From positions 1-64,000 of the forward strand of contig NIVC01001281.1 in the NCBI GenBank assembly GCA_002269645.1: 64,000 nt of DNA, written 5' to 3'. Positions 2,072 through 44,687 of the stretch are shown here, in pieces (position 1 is the stretch's first letter; the number at the start of each line of letters is the position of its first letter). The notes beneath the pieces are model-generated. The model ran no database searches. It was given only the letters and a program-made list of their open reading frames with translations, and was not told the origin of the DNA. The DNA is from Macrostomum lignano (Eukaryota). Both the position numbers and the translations under genes were made by a program.

Positions 2072-16884
<14,813 letters not shown>

Positions 16885-17199
16885 TTAAACTGACTATGAA
16901 TATTACTAGCTACTGCAAGTAGCAAGATTGCATGTGACTATGTAACTTTTTGTCTTTGTCTTTTAATGCGTCGTGTTAACGTCCGACTTCTATATACTTT
17001 ATATGCGTTTTTATTTATTACTAACAATATGAGCTATAAACAAAAACATTTTCCATCAAGAGATGCTTCCGTGTGTTTTCAATTGAATAAATGATGAAAT
17101 ATCAATATTAAATATTAGAGCTAATCGGTAAACCTTCAATTTTTTTAATAGTTTTTTCGGAGTCATTCATCAGTAAATCCACTAGTTTAATAAGTTGGT

Positions 17200-18765
17200 A
17201 TCGTGACAGTGACGGGGTTGCAGTGACAGTGACGGGGTTGCAGTGACAGTGACGGGGTTGCAGTGACAGTGAGGGGTTGCAGTGACAGTGACGGGGTTGC
17301 AGTGACAGTGACGGGGCTACAGTGACTGTTTCAGTGACAGTGACTGGATTACAGTGACAGTGAGGGGTTACAGTGACAGTGACTGTTGCAGTGACAGTGA
17401 GGGGTTACAGTGACAGTGAGGGGTTACAGTGACAGTGACTGTTTCAGTGACAGTGAGGGGTTGCAGTGACAGTGAGGGGTTACAGTGACAGTGAGGGGTT
17501 ACAGTGACAGTGACTGTTTCAGTGACAGTGAGGGGTTGCAGTGACAGTGAGGGGTTACAGTGACAGTGAGGGGTTACAGCGACAGTGACTGTTTCAGTGA
17601 CAGTGACGGGGTTGCAGTGACAGTGAGGGGTTGCAGTGACTGTTTCAGTGACAGTGACTGGATTACAGTGACAGTGAGGGGTTACAGTGACAGTGAGGGG
17701 TTACAGTGACAGTGAGGGGTTACAGTGACAGTGACTGTTGCAGTGACAGTGACGGGGTTACAGTGACAGTGAGGGGTTACAGTGACAGTGAGGGGTTACA
17801 GTGACAGTGACTGTTTCAGTGACAGTGAGGGGCTGCAGTGACAGTGAGGGGTTACAGTGACAGTGAGGGGTTACAGTGACAGTGAGGGGTTACAGTGACA
17901 GTGACTGTTTCAGTGACAGTGACGGGGTTGCAGTGACAGTGAGGGGTTGCAGTGACTGTTTCAGTGACAGTGACTGGATTACAGTGACAGTGAGGGGTTA
18001 CAGTGACAGTGCCTGTTTCAGTGACAGTGACTGTTTCAGTGACAGTGAGGGGTTGCAGTGACAGTGACTGTTTCAGTGACAGTGAGGGGTTGTAGAGACA
18101 GTGAGGGGTTGCAGTGACAGTGACGGGGTTGCAGTGACAGTGACGGGGTTGCAGTGACACAAAGGAGTTGCAGTGACATTGACGGGGTTGCAGTGACAGT
18201 GACGGGGTTGCAGTGACAGTGACGGGGTTGCAGTGACAGTGAGGGGTTACAGTGACAGTGAGGGGTTACAGTGACAGTGACTGTTTCAGTGACAGTGACG
18301 GGGTTGCAGTGACAGTGAGGGGTTGCAGTGACTGTTTCAGTGACAGTGACTGGATTACAGTGACAGTGAGGGGTTACAGTGACAGTGCCTGTTTCAGTGA
18401 CAGTGACTGTTTCAGTGACAGTGAGGGGTTGCAGTGACAGTGACTGTTTCAGTGACAGTGAGGGGTTGTAGAGACAGTGAGGGGTTGCAGTGACAGTGAC
18501 GGGGTTGCAGTGACACAAAGGAGTTGCAGTGACATTGACGGGGTTGCAGTGACAGTGACGGGGTTGCAGTGACAGTGACGGGGTTGCAGTGACAGTGACG
18601 GGGTTGCAGTGACAGTGACGGGGTTGCAGTGACAGTGACGGGTTGCAGTGACATTGACGGGGTTTCAGTGACACAGAGGAGTTGCAGTGACATTGACGGG
18701 GTTGCAGTGACAGTGACGGAGTTGCAGTGACAGTGAGGGGTTGCAGTGACAGTGACAGTGACAAC
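17200..18765. repeat. 20-bp minisatellite (CAGTGACAGTGACGGGGTTG) with a 376-bp block duplication
   Basis: Identical ORF-track peptides at 17876 and 18252. Confidence 0.95.
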
Positions 18766-19265
18766 TAAAGTGCCGGTGGCAGTGACCGTGAGAGCGCCAC
18801 GAAACAGAACGTGTGAAAAAACATTTACAAAAGTGTGATGCATGAAAATTCTGTCAAGAATTCGATTTTAATCAATTGGTTAATCAGACAACTGCAAATT
18901 GCTTTCAACGTCTTGTTTGGTCTTAATTCTCCAAAGATCTAATCGGATCCAATTGGTGCTCATTCCCTGCTCAGACGGCTGCTCAATATTGTAGAGCTTG
19001 GCAGTTCCCACGCTGCTGTTCCCCTCTGGCCTGCTCAGCAACAGCTCAACCCAACCCCTCTAACTCCCTTCTCATCTGTTTGCCTTGTCCAAAACCCGCC
19101 TCCATGCCCAGCTCTATAATTCCCAGCAGAAATAATCGCGCAACTTCTCCCTATGCCCAAATTCCCCCAATCCGTGGCTCCATCTCTCCCGCTACCCAGC
19201 CTCCCAAACGCCTGACAGTTTTCCTGCTGCTTCCCCACTCCAACCCCGATCCCAACCCCGAGCCC

Positions 19266-19279
19266 GTTGCCATGCCAAC
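19266..19279. promoter_or_regulatory. RFX X-box-like motif GTTGCCATGCCAAC
   Basis: One mismatch to GTTGCCATGGCAAC, ~345 bp upstream of the MGCNSSK start codon. Confidence 0.5.
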
Positions 19280-19622
19280 AAGCATATCCTGAAGCAAAAC
19301 CTGGGGTGCAAATAAAAATCCTGTCGCCAGCCCCCCCCCCCCCTCAAGAGAGACCTCCCGCCTCGCCTCGGCCCCATTGTCTTTGCCAGTCCCTCCTTTG
19401 TCCTTACTTCTGCTTCTGCAGCAGCTGCCGCCAGTCTCTTCTAATCTTGCTTGCTTTGAAATTATAGTTCTTCTACCCCAGCTTATAGAAATCGATTTTT
19501 TCTTGACTAGAAGCAGTTCGACTTCCCTTAAGCCGGTTAAATAACAAAGTCTTGACCGGGTTTCGCTTTCGTGTGTACACACAGTCGACAGGACAGGAAA
19601 ACCAACTGATTGACATATCGGC

Positions 19623-22600
19623 ATGGGTTGCAACAGCAGCAAAGGCCAGCAGCAGGGTAAGAACGAAGTACATGTATTTTAATAAAAGAGCTTGTGAATG
19701 TAATCAATTGTAATCAACGAAATCATTGTCACGTATATGCTCGTAACATAAGTCAGGAATGGAAGTGAGGCCCTCAGTGCCATCATCTCTTTCAGCTGGT
19801 TTTCTAGCTATGCTGGTTTTTCGTTAGCTACTACCCCACAATCCGAAGATTCTGAGTAGACAAATGCTTCAAATCTTCCCAGCACACCAAAATTATTGAA
19901 TTGTAGCATTCAAATGTCCAATCTCCTTTCTCTTCATCGGTTATCGTCAAACGGGGCCTTCAAATCTCTGCAAACGCGAAATGACTATAGTATTCGTAAA
20001 AAAACTGTTGCCATGGTAACCAATGCTAAGCGTGTGCAGAGTTGGAGCGAACAGCTGCAAAAATAAAAATAGAGAAACGAGGGGGGGGAAGCCCACATCG
20101 CATTGAAATCTCATCTCATTCTCCTCTTTCTCTCGCTTGAGAACTCCACAGAGTTAGCTGTCCATGGCCCTGGCAACCAGGGTAGGAACAGGGAACAGGG
20201 AATAGAGAATGCAGCTGGCAGGTCTATAGGGAATCTATTTACTCCCCAATTCCCCACTCCCACCGCAGCGAGCCATTTTTTACCTTCCCTACCCGCCTCT
20301 CTCTCTTCCCCTCTCCTGCCTCTAGTAGAAGCGCTCTGAGGATTTGGGGTGGAAAATTGTTTTTGTCGGCGTCTACAATACTGCCGCACACTTCAGCAGC
20401 CGGGTGGGGGGGGGGTTGAACTGGGGCATGGAAAACAGGGCTTGTCCCGTCTGGCGACTCTCCTATTTCCCTCTTCCTCTCTCCCCCAGTCCTCAGCGTT
20501 ACCATGGCAACGTATTTACTGACGCTCGTTTGTTTTAGTGGGCAAGCCCGCCAGCCACCCACACCAACCCATTCGCTACCGGACACCCGGACACACACAC
20601 AGAGACAGAGGGTCGCGGCGAAATCATTTGGCTAACAACGCGACAGGGGGCCGCAGCTTTAAAGAGGCTGGAAGTTCCATCCCCTCTAACCCGCCTCCCC
20701 TCTTCCTCATACCAGATATGGATAATTGGGAATCGTGAGGGCCGCGGGGTGGACAATGGACATGCGATAACCCCTCCCCCACCGTTTCAACTGACTATTT
20801 TGGCTAGCAACGCGGAGGCGGTGGAGATCCGACAGGGCATCGATTAAAAAAAATTCCGTTGCGCAGTATAAATTTTCCACGATGTTGAATGACGCACATG
20901 GTCCTTTAAACTGATAGTAAAAAGACAGTCCTGACGAGAGGCGGATTATGGGGGGCGGAGGATAAGGGATGATAGAGAACTGAAGACAAACGAGGAATAT
21001 TTAAGGGCAGGTGATGGGGCGGTTGATAACTGGTTGGTTGATTAGACAGATGATGAGGCGGACAATGGAGAGCGGATGATGGGGCGGATGATGGGGCGGA
21101 TGATAGAGAGCGGATGATGGGGCGGATGTTAGAGAGCAGATGATGGGGAGGATGATGAGGCAGATGATGGGGCGGATGGTGGGGAGGATGATGAGGCGGA
21201 TGATGGGGCGGATGATGGGGCGGATGATAGAGAGCGGATGATAGGGCGGATGATAGGGCGGATGATAGAGAGCGGATGATGGGGCGTTTGATGAGCGGAT
21301 GATAGACAGCGGATGATGGGGCGGATGTTAGAGAGCGGATGATAGGGCGGACGATGGGGCGGATGATGGGCGGATGCGTGTTGGGATGTGAGGTAGGAGA
21401 GACTCATCGCCATTACAAGCAGACTAACTTTACTTCCGCAGCCATAAAAACCCGCCCACCCTTTCCCACCATCCAGTTGCGAACGGCAACAAGCCGGCAG
21501 GCGGACAGACGGCGGCCAGCGGCAACGCGGCCGCGAACTCCTCCAAGCCGGCAGCGGGCCAGCAGCAGCAGCAGCAGCAGGCCAACGCGGCCGACAACGC
21601 CGACAAGAAGCAGGAGAACGGCGCTGCCCCCGAGGCAAACGGGGAGACTGGTAAACATTTTAATAAGCGATGAAGCCGGCCAGTTTGAAATCTACTTAAT
21701 TACGACCGTTCACTTTTTTCAACTGGCAGGCGCCGCCGCAGCCGGAAGTTCCACGCCGCAGCCAGCCGAGAATGCCGAAGGTGCGGGCGAAGAAAAGCCG
21801 GCGGACGAGGCGGCGGCAGCGCCGGAGGCCGGAGACCAAGCCGAGGCTTCAGCGACGCCGGCGGCCGGTGACGCCCCGCCAGATGCCGCTTCGCCGGCGC
21901 CGGCAGCCGAGGGAGAGGCCGCCGCTCAGGGCGAGACCGCCGGGGAGGAACGTGAGTTCAAAGAGCGGATCTGAGGGGCGGATCTGAGGGCGGATCTGAG
22001 GGGCGGATCTGAAGGGCGGATCTGAGGGGCGGATCTGAAGGGCGGATCTGAAGGGCGGATCTGAAGGGCGGATCTGAAGGGCGGATCTGAAGGGCGGATC
22101 TGAAGGGCGGATCTGAGAGAGAATTGGAGGGGCGGATCTGAAGAGCGGATCTGAAGGAAGGGCGGATCTTAGAGAGGATTGGAGGGGCGGATCTGAAGGG
22201 CGGATCTGAAGGAAGGGCGGATCTGATAGAGGATTGGAGGGCGGATCTGAAAAGCGGATCTGATAGAGAATTGGAGGGGCGAATTTGAGGGCGGATCTGA
22301 ATGGCGGATCTGATAGAGGATTGGAGGGGCGAATTTGAGGGCGGATCTGAATGGCTGAACTGATAGAGGATTGGAGATTGGAGGGGCAAATCTGAAGGGC
22401 GGATCTGAGGGGCGGACGTGAGGGGCGGATCTGAGAGGCGGATCTGAGGGCGGATCTGAGGGGCGGATCTGAGGGGCGGATCTGAGGGGCGGACGTGAGG
22501 GGCGGATCTGAGGGGCGGATCTGAGGGCGGATCTGAGGGCGGATCTGAGGGTGGATTTGAGGGCGGATCTGAGGGCGGATCTGAGGGCGGATTTGAGGGC

Positions 22601-22973
22601 GGATCTGAGGGCGGATCTGAGGGGCGGATCTGAGGGGTAGATCTGAAGGGCGGATCTGAAGGGCGGATCTGAGGGGCTGATCTGAGGGGCGGATCTGAAG
22701 GGTGGGCTGAAGGGCGGATTTGAGTGAGGATTGGAGCGGCAGGTCTGAAGGGCGGATCTAACTTTACCTTCCTCATCTTCATCATGAGCCTTCATCATCC
22801 GCCAGATCTTTGGAGCGGATCTGAGAGAGGATTGCAAGGACGGAAGTTGGTTCTGAGGAAGTATCGGGGGCGGATCTTAGGGGCGGAATAGATGGGGAGC
22901 GGAAACGACAAAGTTTACCGAGGTGAATTCGCAAATGCAAACTTAATGCTGAATTTCAGAGCAAGCTGCCTGA
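19623..22973 (+). CDS. Uncharacterised 147-aa Ala/Gly/Glu-rich disordered protein with N-terminal MGCNSSK acylation motif (MARCKS/BASP1/cystin-like architecture)
   Basis: Exons 19623-19656, 21477-21650, 21730-21951, 22960-22973. All are phase-1 GT-AG junctions and total 444 nt in one frame: [21 protein letters not shown]...[14 protein letters not shown]...GEEQQAA*. Confidence 0.8.
20007..20020. promoter_or_regulatory. RFX X-box GTTGCCATGGTAAC
   Basis: Consensus 14-bp X-box in intron 1 of the MGCNSSK gene. Confidence 0.65.
20498..20511. promoter_or_regulatory. RFX X-box GTTACCATGGCAAC
   Basis: Consensus 14-bp X-box in intron 1 of the MGCNSSK gene. Confidence 0.65.
21050..21375. repeat. 12-bp repeat (GGGGCGGATGAT)
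   Basis: Direct reading. Confidence 0.9.
21965..22900. repeat. 12-13-bp repeat (GAGGGGCGGATCT)
   Basis: Direct reading. Confidence 0.93.
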
Positions 22974-23664
22974 GCCGGGAGTTCGAGACGGACAACCCAG
23001 AGACTCTTGGCTTTCTGTGTCTACTTTTCTAAGGCATTGTCTCCTAACAGTAAAGTTGTCTCAAAACTTCTCTCTCTCTCTCTCTCTATGAAAACAGTGC
23101 ACTAAAAACTCGAATATTTTTGTACTCTTTCTCTCTTCAGTCAAATTTTCTATCGCTGAAATGAAAAAAAAATCGCAGACGAATAAAAAGGCGAGAACAA
23201 CGCTTCGTGTTTTTTGGCTCAATTGGTTTTTTTCTCGGCAGTTTTACCCAAGCTCTTTTGTTGTGCCTTCTCTGCTTTTTTTGTGTGAGTGATTTTATTT
23301 TTCAAAGCCTCTTTATTTTTTATGCTACCCGCTGCGGCTGCAGCAATATAAAATCTGACTGACTGATTTCCAGAGAGGCCTTAATTGTAAATTGTTGAGC
23401 ACTCTAACTATTTTTATTACTAATGATATCTAATTGATCCGAGTAATTAAGTCAAGGTGTGAACAACTGCGCAATGCACTGAATTTTGCAAGATTATTCC
23501 TGTTTGGAAAAAATGTTAATGGCTTATGTTAATAAAACAAATAAACAGTTTGAACTGCGTTTTACTGACTAATATTTAAACTAAATACGAGTTTGGTGAT
23601 CTTTGCTGACTTCACTTGACAGTTGGTGCCAGCCGTTTCAGTTCAACGGGGCTGCGATCTTGGA

Positions 23665-26099: not shown

Positions 26100-33639
<7,540 letters not shown>

Positions 33640-40422: not shown

Positions 40423-43400
40423 TCAGGCCGACATTTCTACGTCCACACTGCCGGCAGCTGCAGCAGCCACCAGGTCCGCCGTCGCTGGAGGACTACCGTT
40501 GCAGCTGCCGTTGCCTTCGGGCACTTCGGCGACGGCCGCAGCATGGTCGGCATTAGCGACGTCGACCTCAAGACGGCGAAGAATTCTTGACGTAGCCAAA
40601 CGCGAAGCGGCTTTGGACCGTTTGCGAATTCGACGCAGATACTTGCGCACTAGCTGGCGAGTTTGCCTGTGGCCTGTAGAAGTTCGAGCGAAATAGGGCG
40701 CGGTATTATATACTACTGACCAATGCTGAATAGTAATACAAGTAGTGCATCATCGTAAAATAAAATGTGGAATATAAATTAATTTTAAATGTGAAAATGA
40801 TCAACTATACATACATGAATTATTAATGTACGGTGGGGAAAAACTTTATCCCAAAGAATTGATAATACAGACCTGCGATCTAAGGTAGGGATCTCTGATC
40901 TATGGTAGGGACCGCCTATCTAGGGTAGGGACCTCGATCTAAGGTAGGGACTTCCGATTTAAGGTAGGGACTTCCGATTTAAGGTAGGGACCTCGATCTA
41001 GGATAGGGACCTCCAATCTAGGATAGGGATAGCCGATATAGGGTAGGGACCTCCGATCTACGGTAGGGACCTCCGATCTAGGGTAGGGATCTCTGATCTA
41101 GGGTAGGGATCTCTAATCTAGGGTAGGGACCTCCGATCTAGGGTAGGGACCTCCGATCTAGGGTAGGGATCTCTGATCTAGGGTAGGGACCTCCGATCTA
41201 GGGTAGGGACCTCCGATCTAGGGTAGGGACCTCCGATCTAGGGTAGGGACCTCCGATCTAGGGTAGGGACCTCCGATCTAGGGTAGGGACCTCCGATCTA
41301 GGGTAGTAGGGATTTCTGATCTAGGGTAGGGATCTCCGATCTAGGGTAGGTACCTCGGATTTGGAATATACATTTCGAATTTAGAGATTTATGGTTAATG
41401 GGGAAAGCCAAACAAGAAAAGAAGAAATTGCTTACAAATTTTCTGAGCATGGCTGAGCGGTCGCAGGTGAAATTTTCGCAAAAAATTCGATTTCTCTTTG
41501 AGGTTTCGCCGCAACAGGTCGGGCGTGTGGGCCGGCGAGTCGTTGCCCTCCTCGGACGAGTCCGTGTCGACCCGAGAGCCGGAGGCAGCGGCGGCGCTGT
41601 GATTGTCTGACGGGGCCGCTGCAGATAATGCAGACGCGGCGGCGTCCACGCGACTCTGCTGCGGCGACAGAGTTGGCGGCTTAGGGCTGCCGGCGGTAAC
41701 GGCTGCGGTGGCAGCTGGGCGGGACGGAGACAGGGACGAGAGCTGATGCTGCTGATGATGATGCTGAGAAGCTGTATAAAGAGTATGCTGCGAGGGCTTC
41801 GGCGGCGTCGGCTTGGACTCGTCGTCGCTGTCCTCGAATGGGCGAAACATTTTGTGGGCGGAACCGGCAGGCCGAGTGCTGACAGCGGCCGGGGCCAGGA
41901 ATGGCGGCCGGATCACAGGCGCAGGGAGACCCGGCTTCCGGCTGAGATCCAGGGCGTCCTCATGCTGCTGCTGCTGCTGGGTGGAGGCAGCGGGCGGTCT
42001 TGAAGTTTTCATACTGGGCGAGGAAGGAATCACAGCGCCAGGGCCTCGATTAGAAGAAGGCGCGGCTGTAGGCGCGAGCGACTTAGCGGGAGTCGGCGGC
42101 TTGGCTGCTGTAGCTGCCGCCGCTGTCACGGTGGTTGTCTTGGCAGCGCCTGCTGGCCTGGCGGGGACGGACTGATGCCCCAGCAGGCCGGCGCCCATGG
42201 CCGAATTGGCATAGTAACCAGCCGGGCCGCCCGACATCATCTGTGAGGAGTCCATCATCATCATTGCCGCGGCTGCGGCCGCCGCCGCCGATGAACTAGA
42301 AGCGCTGGAGGCCATGGCGCCACTAGTGCTGAATGGAGGATAGGAGGCGCTAACTGGCTGATGCCCGGGCCTGTGCTGCTGCTGATGGTAGCCATAAAGC
42401 ATAGCCAGAGAGGCCGGATCTGACGGATAAGGAGGATAAGCTGAGGCCAGGGCCTGCAGCATCTGGTACTGATAGCTATAGCCAATCATCTGGTTATAGT
42501 AGGCGGCAAGCTGGTCGGGGCCCAGCCAGCCAGGCGGCGGCAGGGTACCCAGCGCCATGCTTGGATTGTCCATCGCTGACGATGTTGGAGTGGCGGCAGC
42601 AGCAGCCGCCGCGGCCGCATTCTTGGCTGCAATGTTGCGCAAAGCGTCGGAATAACCGCCGCCGCCGCCACCGCCGGATCCGTGGTGATGGTGAAGCTGC
42701 TGAGCGGCCGAAGCAATCGGCGTCGAGGCCATCGCTGGCCGAGTCTCCGAGGAGCGCGTGATGGGCGGCACAGTGACCGTCACCCGCTCGCGGCCGCCGC
42801 TGCTGCCACTGGCGCCAGCGCGACCACCAATAGTGGCGCAATCCAAGCAGAGCAAACAGTCGCCCTGCAGTCGGACCTCCTCTTTCGAAGTCTTCAATTG
42901 CAGACAGCCGCTGCAAATATATTCGGTTTGATAACTGGCGGAGGCAGCGTCGGGTGCTGAATTTACGCTACTGGAGCTTCGGCGAATCCACTGCCAGCGC
43001 AGGTTAGTATAGCAGAGATCGCAGACTGGGAAGGTGCCATTAGCGCTAGCCTGGCTATTGTGACGCAGGTTGGCTAGAAATGGGAAATAAGGCGAAGCTG
43101 GCCGACCTGATTTGGGCTTGTGACGCAATAGTTTAAGAGTTTCTGGATTGTGCAAAGCGCACAGGCACACGTGACACTGGGCTATCATTGGCCGGACGCC
43201 GGGGTTCGAGCCCGGGGACCCGGCTACACCACCGCCGGCTGGCGATGGCTGACTAGGCGGAGTTCGGCGCAGCTGATAATACCTGGACTGGGGCGGCAGG
43301 CGCTCCTGTTGGGTCCACTGCTGGTGCAGGTGATCGCAGCAGGTGCGACAGGCCAACAAGCGGCCGCGCTGCTTGTCAATCAATAGATGCGAATATTCGC

Positions 43401-44355
43401 AAGTCACTTTGCTCAGCAGAGGATAGAACGGATTCGAACTGGAATTGCCGCCTCCGCCGGTAGAGGACGCCGTTGGTTTCCATGACAACCAAATTGGTGT
43501 ATCTTTAAACGAATCGCCGCACAACGGGCAACTAAGACTTAACGTGCCAGTATTGCAATAAAACTTAGTCTGTCCGCCCTCGCTTACAACTTGATAGACT
43601 CGAGAGTCCTGCGGAGTCTTGACCATCTCGTAGTGCCGATACTGCTCAGCTAGAGACGAATGGCACTGCAAACACAGCTTTGTAGCGCCCTGCGTCAGCG
43701 GCAGCGCCTCAGGCGGCGGGACCAGCTGTTTCAGAAACGGGAAATGCTCGCAATTATCCGACACCCTGGTCGCGTACACAATCTTAGCATCCTGTTTGGC
43801 CATGCTTTTGCGGCATAGGAAACAGCGAATCTGCTGAGCGCCGACTGACGGACTGGCGCGAGACGAAGATCCAGCGCTACTGTTTGCTGCCGACCTGACA
43901 GCTTGCTGCTGTTGCTGCTGCTGTTGCTTCTGATGCTGCTGGTGTTGATGATGATGCTGCTGCTGCTGCTGATGTTGCTGAAGCTGGGCCAGCCTCATCA
44001 ACGCTTCCGGACCGTAAGCCGAGGACGGAGTAAAAAAATCGGACGCACTGGCGCCAGCTCCGGCTGGGCCGGTCATGCCAGCCGATTTGAGCATGCTCAT
44101 ATAGATCTGCTGCTGCAGTAGCCATTGTGCGCTGGCTTCGTCTGTTGAACTTGGCTGCCGCCAGCTGGCTAATAGCTGGTGCCGGCACTGGGCGCAGGTG
44201 CGCACGCTGCCAGATACGCTTGGCGGCTTGGCGCCCCTCGGACACTCGTAGCACATTAGAGAGGGAAAGTAGGGCTCGTGCGGCGCACTTGGATTCGGCG
44301 TCGCTTGTACCTCGCAGGTGGCGGCCGCTGTGCCGCACATGTAGCATACGTCCAT
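40423..44355 (-). CDS. GSE1/Plexus-like nuclear protein with repeated CxxC...(Y/H)FPFL...CxxC motifs, ~1056 aa
   Basis: Exons 41436-44355 and 40423-40673 (phase 1, in frame). Four Cys-pair repeats (e.g. CFLCRK...HFPFLKQLVPPPEALP...LCLQCHSSLAEQY) and EKSNFLRKFHLRPLS resemble recalled GSE1 (KLKFLTIFNLTHIS) and Drosophila Plexus. An upstream exon ending at 44531 (GTGAGT donor) is possible. Confidence 0.7.
40875..41355. repeat. 20-bp minisatellite (CTAGGGTAGGGACCTCCGAT) in the GSE1-like intron
   Basis: Direct reading. Confidence 0.94.
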
Positions 44356-44687
44356 GCTCACACACTGGGCTGTGAGATGAGGCAGCGGGAGAAAAGTCGG
44401 GATAACATTTCTTTGGGAAACTCTCGAGATAGAAACTTCTCCTTTAGATCGATACACAAAAATGTCAAGTTGCATTGGCGGATTGGCTCTCATAGACTCG
44501 TGAATCGTGAAATCGAACCCACGGACTCACCAAGTATTCACTATTTAGCTTTTTTATTAGAGGCAGGGGGTTGTGTGCACCCTGGCGCACTTTAAGCGAC
44601 ATAGGCACGCAACCGGCGAGAGGCATTACTGCCCATTCCGCCGACTCCCCTGAGCAGGCATACAAGCGCGCGGATACGTACACAGGC

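Follow-up and report, generated by a model that had tools for sequence, protein, structure and literature searches.

A small, unannotated gene of four exons and ~3.7 kb probably lies on the forward strand of a 64,000-nucleotide (nt) stretch of the genome of the flatworm Macrostomum lignano (NCBI GenBank assembly GCA_002269645.1, contig NIVC01001281.1, positions 1 to 64,000; the whole stretch is referred to here as the window). The gene would encode a protein of 147 amino acids (aa) that starts with the acylation-type sequence MGCNSSK, and its first exon lies within a cluster of X-boxes, the sites of RFX transcription factors. We read the locus as a genuine, lineage-restricted gene that would be transcribed under RFX control and would encode a disordered protein tethered to the membrane by dual acylation. 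With all of its parts taken together, this reading is tentative and, in our judgment, somewhat less than evenly probable.

Joined, the four exons give a 444-nt coding sequence with GT..AG at every junction. The coding part of exon 1 (19623 to 19656; start context atcggcATGG) comprises 11 codons plus 1 nt and ends in phase 1 at the donor AGG/GTAAGA (a slash marks the splice junction). Intron 1 (19657 to 21476, 1820 nt, acceptor ccctttcccaccatccag) contains most of the X-box cluster, a pair of 16-mers, and a 12/26-nt minisatellite at 21049 to 21376. It is followed by exon 2 (21477 to 21650, 174 nt, 71% GC, donor CTG/GTAAAC), by intron 2 (21651 to 21729, 79 nt, 38% GC), which starts with GTAAAC and ends with ttttttcaactggcag, and by exon 3 (21730 to 21951, 222 nt, 77% GC, donor AAC/GTGAGT), which encodes an acidic Ala/Glu/Pro/Gly tail. 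Intron 3 (21952 to 22959, 1008 nt, acceptor aatgctgaatttcag) is mostly a minisatellite of 13-nt period (21965 to 22759), and the coding part of exon 4 (22960 to 22973) ends the protein with ...QQAA and the stop codon TGA at 22971 to 22973. Reading through into intron 2 meets a stop after 7 codons; retention of intron 3 gives a 150-aa product with a different C terminus.

The predicted leader, a region of core promoter and 5' untranslated region (UTR) at 19274 to 19622, is without ATG. It holds the TATA-like sequence TATAG at 19463 and 19484 and a good 3' splice-type site, tttcgctttcgtgtgtacacacag, that ends at 19584 and is a candidate spliced-leader or 5' UTR acceptor; to judge from what has been described for M. 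lignano, a spliced leader could be added there (PMC5730564). Beyond the stop codon, the probable 3' UTR (22974 to 23210) carries AATAAA at 23182 to 23187, 209 nt past the stop, followed ~20 nt further on by the GT/T-rich stretch GTGTTTTTTGG. This is the probable poly(A) signal in use, and other AATAAA hexamers stand at 23531 and 23540. The candidate gene is probably transcribed and spliced. The initial annotation, a reading of the DNA that preceded this analysis, had proposed a four-exon protein invisible in the list of open reading frames (ORFs), and this agrees with the list, which shows just an unspliced 211-aa ORF at 21339 to 21974. That ORF and the minus-strand ORFs at 19151 to 19642, 20239 to 20598, and 21129 to 21638, which overlap the gene or run antisense to it, were rejected as alternatives, having no Pfam family and poorer codon scores. 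No known RNA families or tRNAs were found in the region.

Exons 2 and 3 are very likely coding. Triplet periodicity, measured by a position-by-base chi-square for each exon and for two control stretches of the same GC island, was strong in exon 2 (p = 5e-6) and exon 3 (p = 1e-12) and was not seen in the controls (p > 0.2). In the predicted frames, codon position 2 is without any T in both exons; in exon 3, G makes up 71% of position 1, and variation is greatest at position 3 (H = 1.85), as expected of a wobble position. The synonymous choices (GCC, GGC, GAG, CAG, CCG, AAC, AAG, and GAC) agree with those of the window's own genes. These genes also supplied two codon tables, one from a DRC6 gene and an HNF4-type gene and the other from a low-complexity 1032-aa ORF, all described below. 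The predicted frame of exon 2 is ahead of the other two by 36 to 71 bits with both tables, and that of exon 3 is ahead by 27 to 38 bits with the 1032-aa-ORF table only. Furthermore, the two exons sit in different genomic frames, and the length of intron 2 is 1 mod 3, so that removal of its 79 nt gives exactly the shift required from one frame to the other. The exons, at 71 to 77% GC, contrast with intron 2 at 38%; their repeats are of a triplet type, (CAG)n, versus the 12-, 13-, and 26-nt arrays of the introns; and the splice sites of DRC6 and HNF4, elsewhere in the window, are similar to those of the candidate. The GenBank annotation of M. lignano deliberately dropped transcripts that overlap repeats, and the missing annotation of the candidate could follow from this practice (PMC5730564). 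Short, repeat-flanked, low-complexity genes can escape pipelines that discard such transcripts.

Exons 2 and 3 contain no in-frame Met, and the frame of exon 2 closes 49 nt upstream; therefore, an upstream exon with an ATG and a phase-1 end is required. We surveyed all ATG..GT phase-1 combinations between 16.1 and 21.5 kb (n = 41), scoring each donor against MAG/GTRAGT, and the exon at 19623 had the best donor of all (7/9). Its start codon has G at both -3 and +4. No ATG occurs in the 351 nt that precede it, where ~4.0 would be expected from local composition, and only 1.1% of shuffled sequences equal this. An MGC start that also fits the myristoylation pattern PROSITE PS00008, G-{EDRKHPFYW}-x(2)-[STAGCN]-{P}, is found at 4 of the 1553 ATGs in the window (0.26%). 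The PS00008 pattern by itself fits 32 of the 1553, and acylation-like N termini do arise by chance: a minus-strand ORF at 5154 to 5531 begins with MGGGLSK and overlaps, in another frame, a Cys-rich ORF with CxxCxGxG-type repeats (5177 to 5665).

The predicted protein uses 13 residue types (46 Ala, 18 Gly, 17 Gln, 15 Glu, 12 Pro, 10 Asn, 9 Ser, 6 Lys, 6 Asp, 5 Thr, and one each of Met, Cys, and Val), and Ile, Leu, Phe, Tyr, Trp, His, and Arg are wholly missing. It has a predicted isoelectric point (pI) of ~4.05, a GRAVY score of -0.93, and a net charge of ~-15. The charge is unevenly placed. Residues 1 to 56 are weakly basic, with a neutral Gln/Asn/Gly/Ala linker of pI 9.5 at residues 8 to 56, and residues 57 to 147 form a strongly acidic Ala/Glu/Pro/Gly tail with 19 Asp plus Glu versus 1 Lys. 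Because there are no hydrophobic core residues, the chain is predicted to be intrinsically disordered. No Pfam family matched the 147-aa protein at E <= 0.1. The description of the product as acidic, low in complexity, and free of domains in the initial annotation is borne out by composition, by a pI near 4, and by this blank Pfam result.

At the N terminus, GCNSSK fits PS00008 and is joined by Cys3, the sole Cys of the protein, and by the favored Ser6 and Lys7; the Gly2-myristoyl/Cys3-palmitoyl pattern with Ser6 that had been noted earlier is thus present. From this consensus, both lipidations are probable, and the call holds only if exon 1 is the true first coding exon. Met-Gly-Cys is a general signal for the plasma membrane and its rafts; it is not specific for cilia, as most proteins that carry it belong to the plasma membrane in general. 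Dual acylation of Gly2 and Cys3, as in calflagin, RP2, and the N termini of Lck, Fyn, and Yes, is able to target cilia (PMC6678300). Neither the cystin motif AxEGG (searched as A.EGG; AAEGE and NAEGA come closest) nor an IQ motif nor a CaaX box occurs in the protein, and a literature search gave no match for the string MGCNSSK.

Searches for relatives were uniformly negative. The full protein had no match among 5.8 billion clusters (phmmer); its 73-aa exon 3 segment had none among 1.84 billion representatives, searched without a word index; the N-terminal 69 aa had none at E <= 10 (phmmer); and tblastn found no paralogue within the window. As a measure of coverage, a search with the DRC6 exon recovered just one old M. 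lignano model. The product had been called an orphan, and it has no homologue in these searches; the databases, for their part, seem to cover neither the transcriptomes of M. lignano nor other species of Macrostomum, so orphan status is unrefuted rather than established. The gene is probably lineage restricted.

The X-box cluster around exon 1 is non-random. We scanned both strands of the window with the 14-bp palindromic restricted consensus GTNRCC N2 RGYAAC (pattern GTNRCCNNRGYAAC), taking exact and then one-mismatch matches. The only exact matches in 64 kb are GTTGCCATGGTAAC at 20007 to 20020 and GTTACCATGGCAAC at 20498 to 20511, which lie in intron 1 at +384 and +875 from the ATG. Each is palindromic and matches on both strands, and the two are reverse complements of one another (14 nt, 100%). 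The chance expectation per window is 0.20 strand-hits, from shuffles, and 0.011 both-strand palindromes. Two one-mismatch sites join them within 1.25 kb: a near-consensus X-box, GTTGCCATGCCAAC, at 19266 to 19279, which has one mismatch on either strand and, at -357, is the sole site of the cluster upstream of the coding start; and a weak X-box-like sequence with a perfect right half, ATGGCCCTGGCAAC, at 20164 to 20177 on the plus strand (+541, intron 1). The sites share their 14-mers alone, with unrelated flanks, and so are not part of a repeat element; an origin as transposon or inverted-repeat ends is ruled out on the same ground. Two consensus and one near-consensus X-box had been reported as controlling the gene, and these do exist, but both consensus sites are downstream of the ATG.

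On the strength of these sites, the candidate gene is probably RFX regulated, with both RFX binding and its sign being predictions. More than one X-box per gene is known; validated Caenorhabditis elegans X-boxes all lie within 500 bp of the gene start; and an X-box that is distal or downstream of the start can repress, as for MAP1A and F25B4.2 (PMC3245922). In one planarian, gene modules for cilia have promoters enriched in the RFX motif and are associated with an Rfx orthologue (PMC12660999). As the cluster is statistically real and this flatworm link between Rfx and cilia exists, RFX-controlled expression in ciliated cells is the best single guess. A search for literature linking Macrostomum to X-boxes found none.

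Other sequences near or resembling these sites were recorded. The 16-mer TTTGGCTARCAACGCG occurs twice on the plus strand of intron 1, 3' of the X-boxes (20627 to 20642 and 20799 to 20814, 172 bp apart), where 0.02 copies would be expected; each copy holds an RFX-type half-site and is followed nearby by CGACAGGG. The pattern was noticed post hoc, and the pair may be an additional duplicated regulatory module. Forkhead-type cores also adjoin the X-boxes, with TATTTAC at 20513 to 20519, 2 nt past the site at 20498, and TGTTGGC on the minus strand (19274 to 19280) overlapping the site at 19266. Such cores occur at 3.8 per kb, and a pairing of RFX with FoxJ1 or FKH-8 is not significant. Near the 5' end of the window, two further X-box-like sites of one mismatch, GTTGCTATGCGAC (1-nt spacer) at 4043 to 4055 and GTTGCTGGGGAAAC at 4429 to 4442, lie ~390 bp apart, and no gene was assigned to them.

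The mechanism that we propose draws on what is established about N-myristoyltransferase and Met-Gly-Cys proteins. The initiator Met would be removed and Gly2 N-myristoylated cotranslationally, after which Cys3 would be S-palmitoylated at the membrane. The two acyl chains would hold the protein at ordered domains of the plasma membrane, on their cytosolic face, leaving the rest of the chain as a tethered, intrinsically disordered polyanion. RFX dimers on the X-boxes around exon 1 (the site at -357 and the two palindromes in intron 1) would set transcription, and expression would be in RFX-positive cells, such as those of the multiciliated epidermis, the protonephridia, or ciliated sensory neurons. 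A location in the ciliary membrane, to which only the X-boxes and the acylation motif point, is plausible, but enrichment there is doubtful. The most specific form of the proposal, in which a flatworm-restricted, RFX-driven, lipidated polyanion coats the inner ciliary membrane of the multiciliated epidermis, is unlikely.

Several observations weigh against the composite reading, and they bear on different parts of it. The exon DNA is so poor in T that exons 2 and 3 can be read without a stop in five of six frames, and openness is therefore no evidence of coding. The exon 3 frame is neutral under the DRC6+HNF4 codon table. No homologue was found, in searches whose sensitivity is limited by low complexity, and the exact 147-aa and 150-aa products are absent from a collection of 15 billion sequences. 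There may, on these grounds, be no protein-coding gene at all, only a GC-rich, T-poor, triplet-biased stretch between minisatellites, through which an ORF was threaded via chance GT and AG dinucleotides to a chance MGC. The open frames, the equivocal exon 3 statistics under one training set, and the absence of the protein from every database searched are compatible with such a stretch, and a model picked by eye carries a multiple-testing problem. We nevertheless consider this quite unlikely. Position 3 varies like a wobble position, unlike a degenerate (GCC)n repeat; the frame is handed over exactly across a compositionally distinct 79-nt GT..AG intron; and codon preferences are common to neighboring genes. 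Donor, start context, ATG-free leader, acylation motif, and AATAAA with its GT/T-rich element agree independently, and the exclusion of repeat-overlapping transcripts from the annotation could account for the absence (PMC5730564).

If the gene is real, its 5' end may be another one. A second acceptor, cgcag/CC at 21441, lies 35 nt before the modelled one and has a consensus branch point, CTAAC, 17 to 21 nt upstream, and rival first exons with phase-1 ATGs stand at the 3' edge of the intron 1 minisatellite. Transcription would begin downstream of the X-boxes. Translation could then start at ATG 21339 or 21354, the donor GAT/GTGAGG at 21388 being spliced across 89 nt to 21477. Alternatively, it could start at ATG 21374, and the same donor would be joined to the acceptor at 21441 across an intron of 54 nt. 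Either way, the favored exon 2 frame and the Ala/Gly/Glu-rich body would be kept, dual acylation would be lost, the short introns would resemble intron 2, and both perfect X-boxes would become ordinary promoter elements 0.9 to 1.4 kb before the start, which is their usual arrangement. These exons have weaker donors (6/9 versus 7/9), poorer start contexts, and leaders that pass through the minisatellite and are filled with upstream ATGs in all frames. The acceptor at 21441, when joined to exon 1 itself, puts exon 2 in an Arg/Pro/Thr/Ser-rich frame that codon statistics disfavor. A downstream start would also leave unexplained why exon 1 combines the best donor, a leader without ATG, and an MGC motif of 0.26% frequency, and we regard it as improbable.

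The location of the two best X-boxes, which are intronic, and the fact that degenerate X-box presence was not predictive in Drosophila, where conserved restricted sites were confirmed in 16 of 25 genes (PMC2375033), count against the regulatory part of the reading. Acylation, moreover, is described as required yet insufficient for ciliary targeting, and the known cases need extra determinants (PMC6678300); here, neither AxEGG, as in cystin, nor EF-hands, as in calflagin, are present. The product could be acylated as modelled and yet be a neuronal membrane protein of the growth or plasticity type, like GAP-43 and BASP1 of the membrane cortex, with X-boxes that repress or act in neurons, so that RFX would confine it to the nervous system. 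Two X-boxes downstream of the ATG would suit repression: in nonneuronal cells, human RFX1 and RFX3 repress MAP1A via a pair of X-boxes in exon 1, and in C. elegans, F25B4.2 is repressed through a distal X-box (PMC3245922). An acylated N terminus followed by an Ala/Glu/Pro-rich disordered chain is also BASP1-like. The protein, however, has neither a basic effector domain nor an IQ motif, only 6 Lys plus Arg, and no Ile, Leu, Phe, Trp, Tyr, or Arg; no Pfam family matches it, and the flatworm RFX motif has been connected with cilia modules (PMC12660999). A neuronal role of this kind seems to us quite improbable.

Finally, the cluster could serve DRC6 as a downstream enhancer, or an unrecognized noncoding transcript as its promoter, with the small gene merely sharing the interval. 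Among the nearby genes, only DRC6 is clearly ciliary, and the 2.5 kb before its ATG contain no X-box with <= 1 mismatch; M. lignano also has multigene precursor transcripts that are resolved by trans-splicing (PMC5730564). Validated invertebrate X-boxes, on the other hand, lie near the start of the regulated gene, in C. elegans always within 500 bp (PMC3245922), and the sites here flank exon 1 of the candidate, with a 1.56-kb minisatellite between them and DRC6, whose poly(A) signal is 2.2 to 3.4 kb upstream of the cluster. We hold this to be very unlikely and retain, as the favored reading, an RFX-regulated gene with an acylated product that starts at 19623.

The upstream neighbor (8860 to 17091, plus strand; leucine-rich-repeat [LRR] exons at 11.9 to 12.3 kb and 15.1 to 16.0 kb) is DRC6/FBXL13 as judged from its LRR array and similarity. 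A 304-aa ORF at 15098 to 16012 is an FBXL-type LRR array (Pfam LRR_6, 2.2e-28). Its best match is an M. lignano UniRef model, which is 91% identical over the 74% of the query that aligned; an internal deletion and frameshift-like stretches in the older model are among the differences. This match places the window in M. lignano or a very close relative. The best named matches are FBXL13/DRC6 of vertebrates and molluscs (37 to 43% identity, E of 1e-46 to 1e-82), compared with ~1e-20 for FBXL2/20. The adjacency to an axonemal gene, DRC6, noted at the outset therefore stands; as evidence for a ciliary role of the candidate, it carries little weight. DRC6 extends past the ORF stop at 16012, through a donor CAA/GTGAGT at 16009, to a last exon at 16809 to 16922 (...IRWDPGREHSSVKQLSSVGLIKLTMNITSYCK stop), as in the UniRef model, and has its own AATAAA at 17086. 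Between DRC6 and the candidate lies the minisatellite, of 19-nt period and 1.56 kb (17203 to 18763). An operon-like unit of the two genes is unlikely given the 2.5-kb spacer with this minisatellite and the separate AATAAA.

Farther downstream, an HNF4-type nuclear receptor gene (29693 to 33442, minus strand) is convergent with the candidate. It has a zf-C4 domain (1.6e-29) at 33017 to 33442, a ligand-binding domain (2.6e-21) at 30426 to 31028, and a helix-12-like end near 29700, and a 24-nt minisatellite of 24.4 copies with 98% matches (29981 to 30565) lies between its ligand-binding-domain exons. On the same strand, at 41395 to 44493, is the uninterrupted 1032-aa ORF, which is Gln/Ala/Ser-rich, with several Cys-pair modules and recurring F/YPFL-type motifs, and for which no Pfam family rose above threshold. 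In a look-up, the UniRef DRC6 model (P0001) and the window ORFs at 21339 to 21974, 15098 to 16012, and 41395 to 44493 were not on record. Minisatellites with units of ~6 to 65 nt (and higher-order periods of up to 376 nt) occupy much of the first 40 kb (TRF) and generate many long spurious ORFs. Simple and tandem repeats make up 15% of the M. lignano genome, so the dense minisatellites of the window are in keeping with their source (PMC5730564). In the M. lignano assembly, 180 Mb is duplicated at >= 95%. The GC content of the window falls from ~50% to ~30% near 48 kb.

The candidate gene bears on no long-standing open question, and its function is something that we infer. If the ciliary proposal is true, the protein would represent a new class of ciliary-membrane component that lacks any domain, recognized solely by signals of regulation and lipidation, and lineage-specific orphan genes would have been recruited into the ancient RFX cilia program. 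If the gene is confirmed, the RFX regulon of a flatworm that moves by a multiciliated epidermis would gain a domain-free, lineage-specific protein, and the N terminus of this protein would provide a compact, natural dual-acylation tag for M. lignano transgenics. The species offers transgenesis, RNA interference, and single-cell resources, among them an atlas of single-cell expression and chromatin accessibility (PMC5730564, PMC12435804), and public RNA-seq, spliced-leader, and poly(A)-tag (CEL-seq/T-fill) reads exist for it (SRP082513, SRR2682326; PMC5730564).

Among known systems, proteins with an SH4-type N terminus (Lck/Fyn/Yes/Lyn, G-alpha i/o, RP2, and calflagin/FCaBP) share with the candidate the Met-Gly-Cys start, Ser6, and Lys7. 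Gly2 myristoylation and Cys3 palmitoylation are established in those proteins and predicted from consensus in the candidate, and the likeness ends with the first 7 residues: the candidate is without a kinase, GTPase, TBCC-like, or EF-hand domain (Pfam). Calflagin/FCaBP in particular has EF-hands after its acylated N terminus, and the candidate differs in this, having no Pfam family at all. With BASP1/CAP-23, MARCKS, and GAP-43, it shares small size and an N-terminal acyl anchor followed by an acidic, Ala/Glu/Pro-rich, disordered, low-complexity chain. There is no sequence or profile similarity to these proteins (phmmer and Pfam, whose sensitivity is limited by low complexity), and their basic effector, IQ, or calmodulin-binding motif is missing from the candidate, which has 6 Lys, 0 Arg, no basic cluster, and no aromatic residues. 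It also differs from them in being predicted to be doubly acylated and in its weakly basic N-terminal third. Cystin-1, at 145 aa versus 147, is acylated at Gly2, largely unstructured, and membrane associated, and it needs AxEGG for ciliary targeting and retention (PMC6678300); the candidate lacks this motif, no homology between the two was found, and palmitoylation of Cys3 is not described for cystin-1 in that work (PMC6678300). The comparison with MARCKS, BASP1, and cystin made in the initial annotation is apt for the acylated start and the disordered, acidic composition and does not extend to an effector or IQ domain, to AxEGG, or to homology.

By sequence comparison, then, the candidate belongs by homology to none of these acylated families. 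Genes under RFX control in C. elegans, Drosophila, and vertebrates resemble it in having the 14-bp palindromic GTNRCC-NN-RGYAAC near the 5' end, with several sites per gene, and by this sequence criterion, restricted consensus near the 5' end, it is an X-box gene. It differs from them in that its two best sites are in intron 1 and not within ~500 bp upstream. Screens for X-boxes became predictive through a criterion of cross-species conservation (PMC2375033).

In its general design, the predicted product also recalls the HASPB protein of Leishmania. HASPB is a lineage-restricted, hydrophilic, low-complexity, repetitive protein in which the N-terminal myristoyl and palmitoyl groups are the only membrane determinant; it differs in having its palmitoylated Cys at position 5 and in being exported to the outer leaflet, it belongs to an unrelated organism, and it has no sequence relation to the candidate. 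By analogy, the candidate protein would probably work like the acylated, natively unfolded proteins of the membrane cortex, such as BASP1, MARCKS, GAP-43, cystin, and HASPB.

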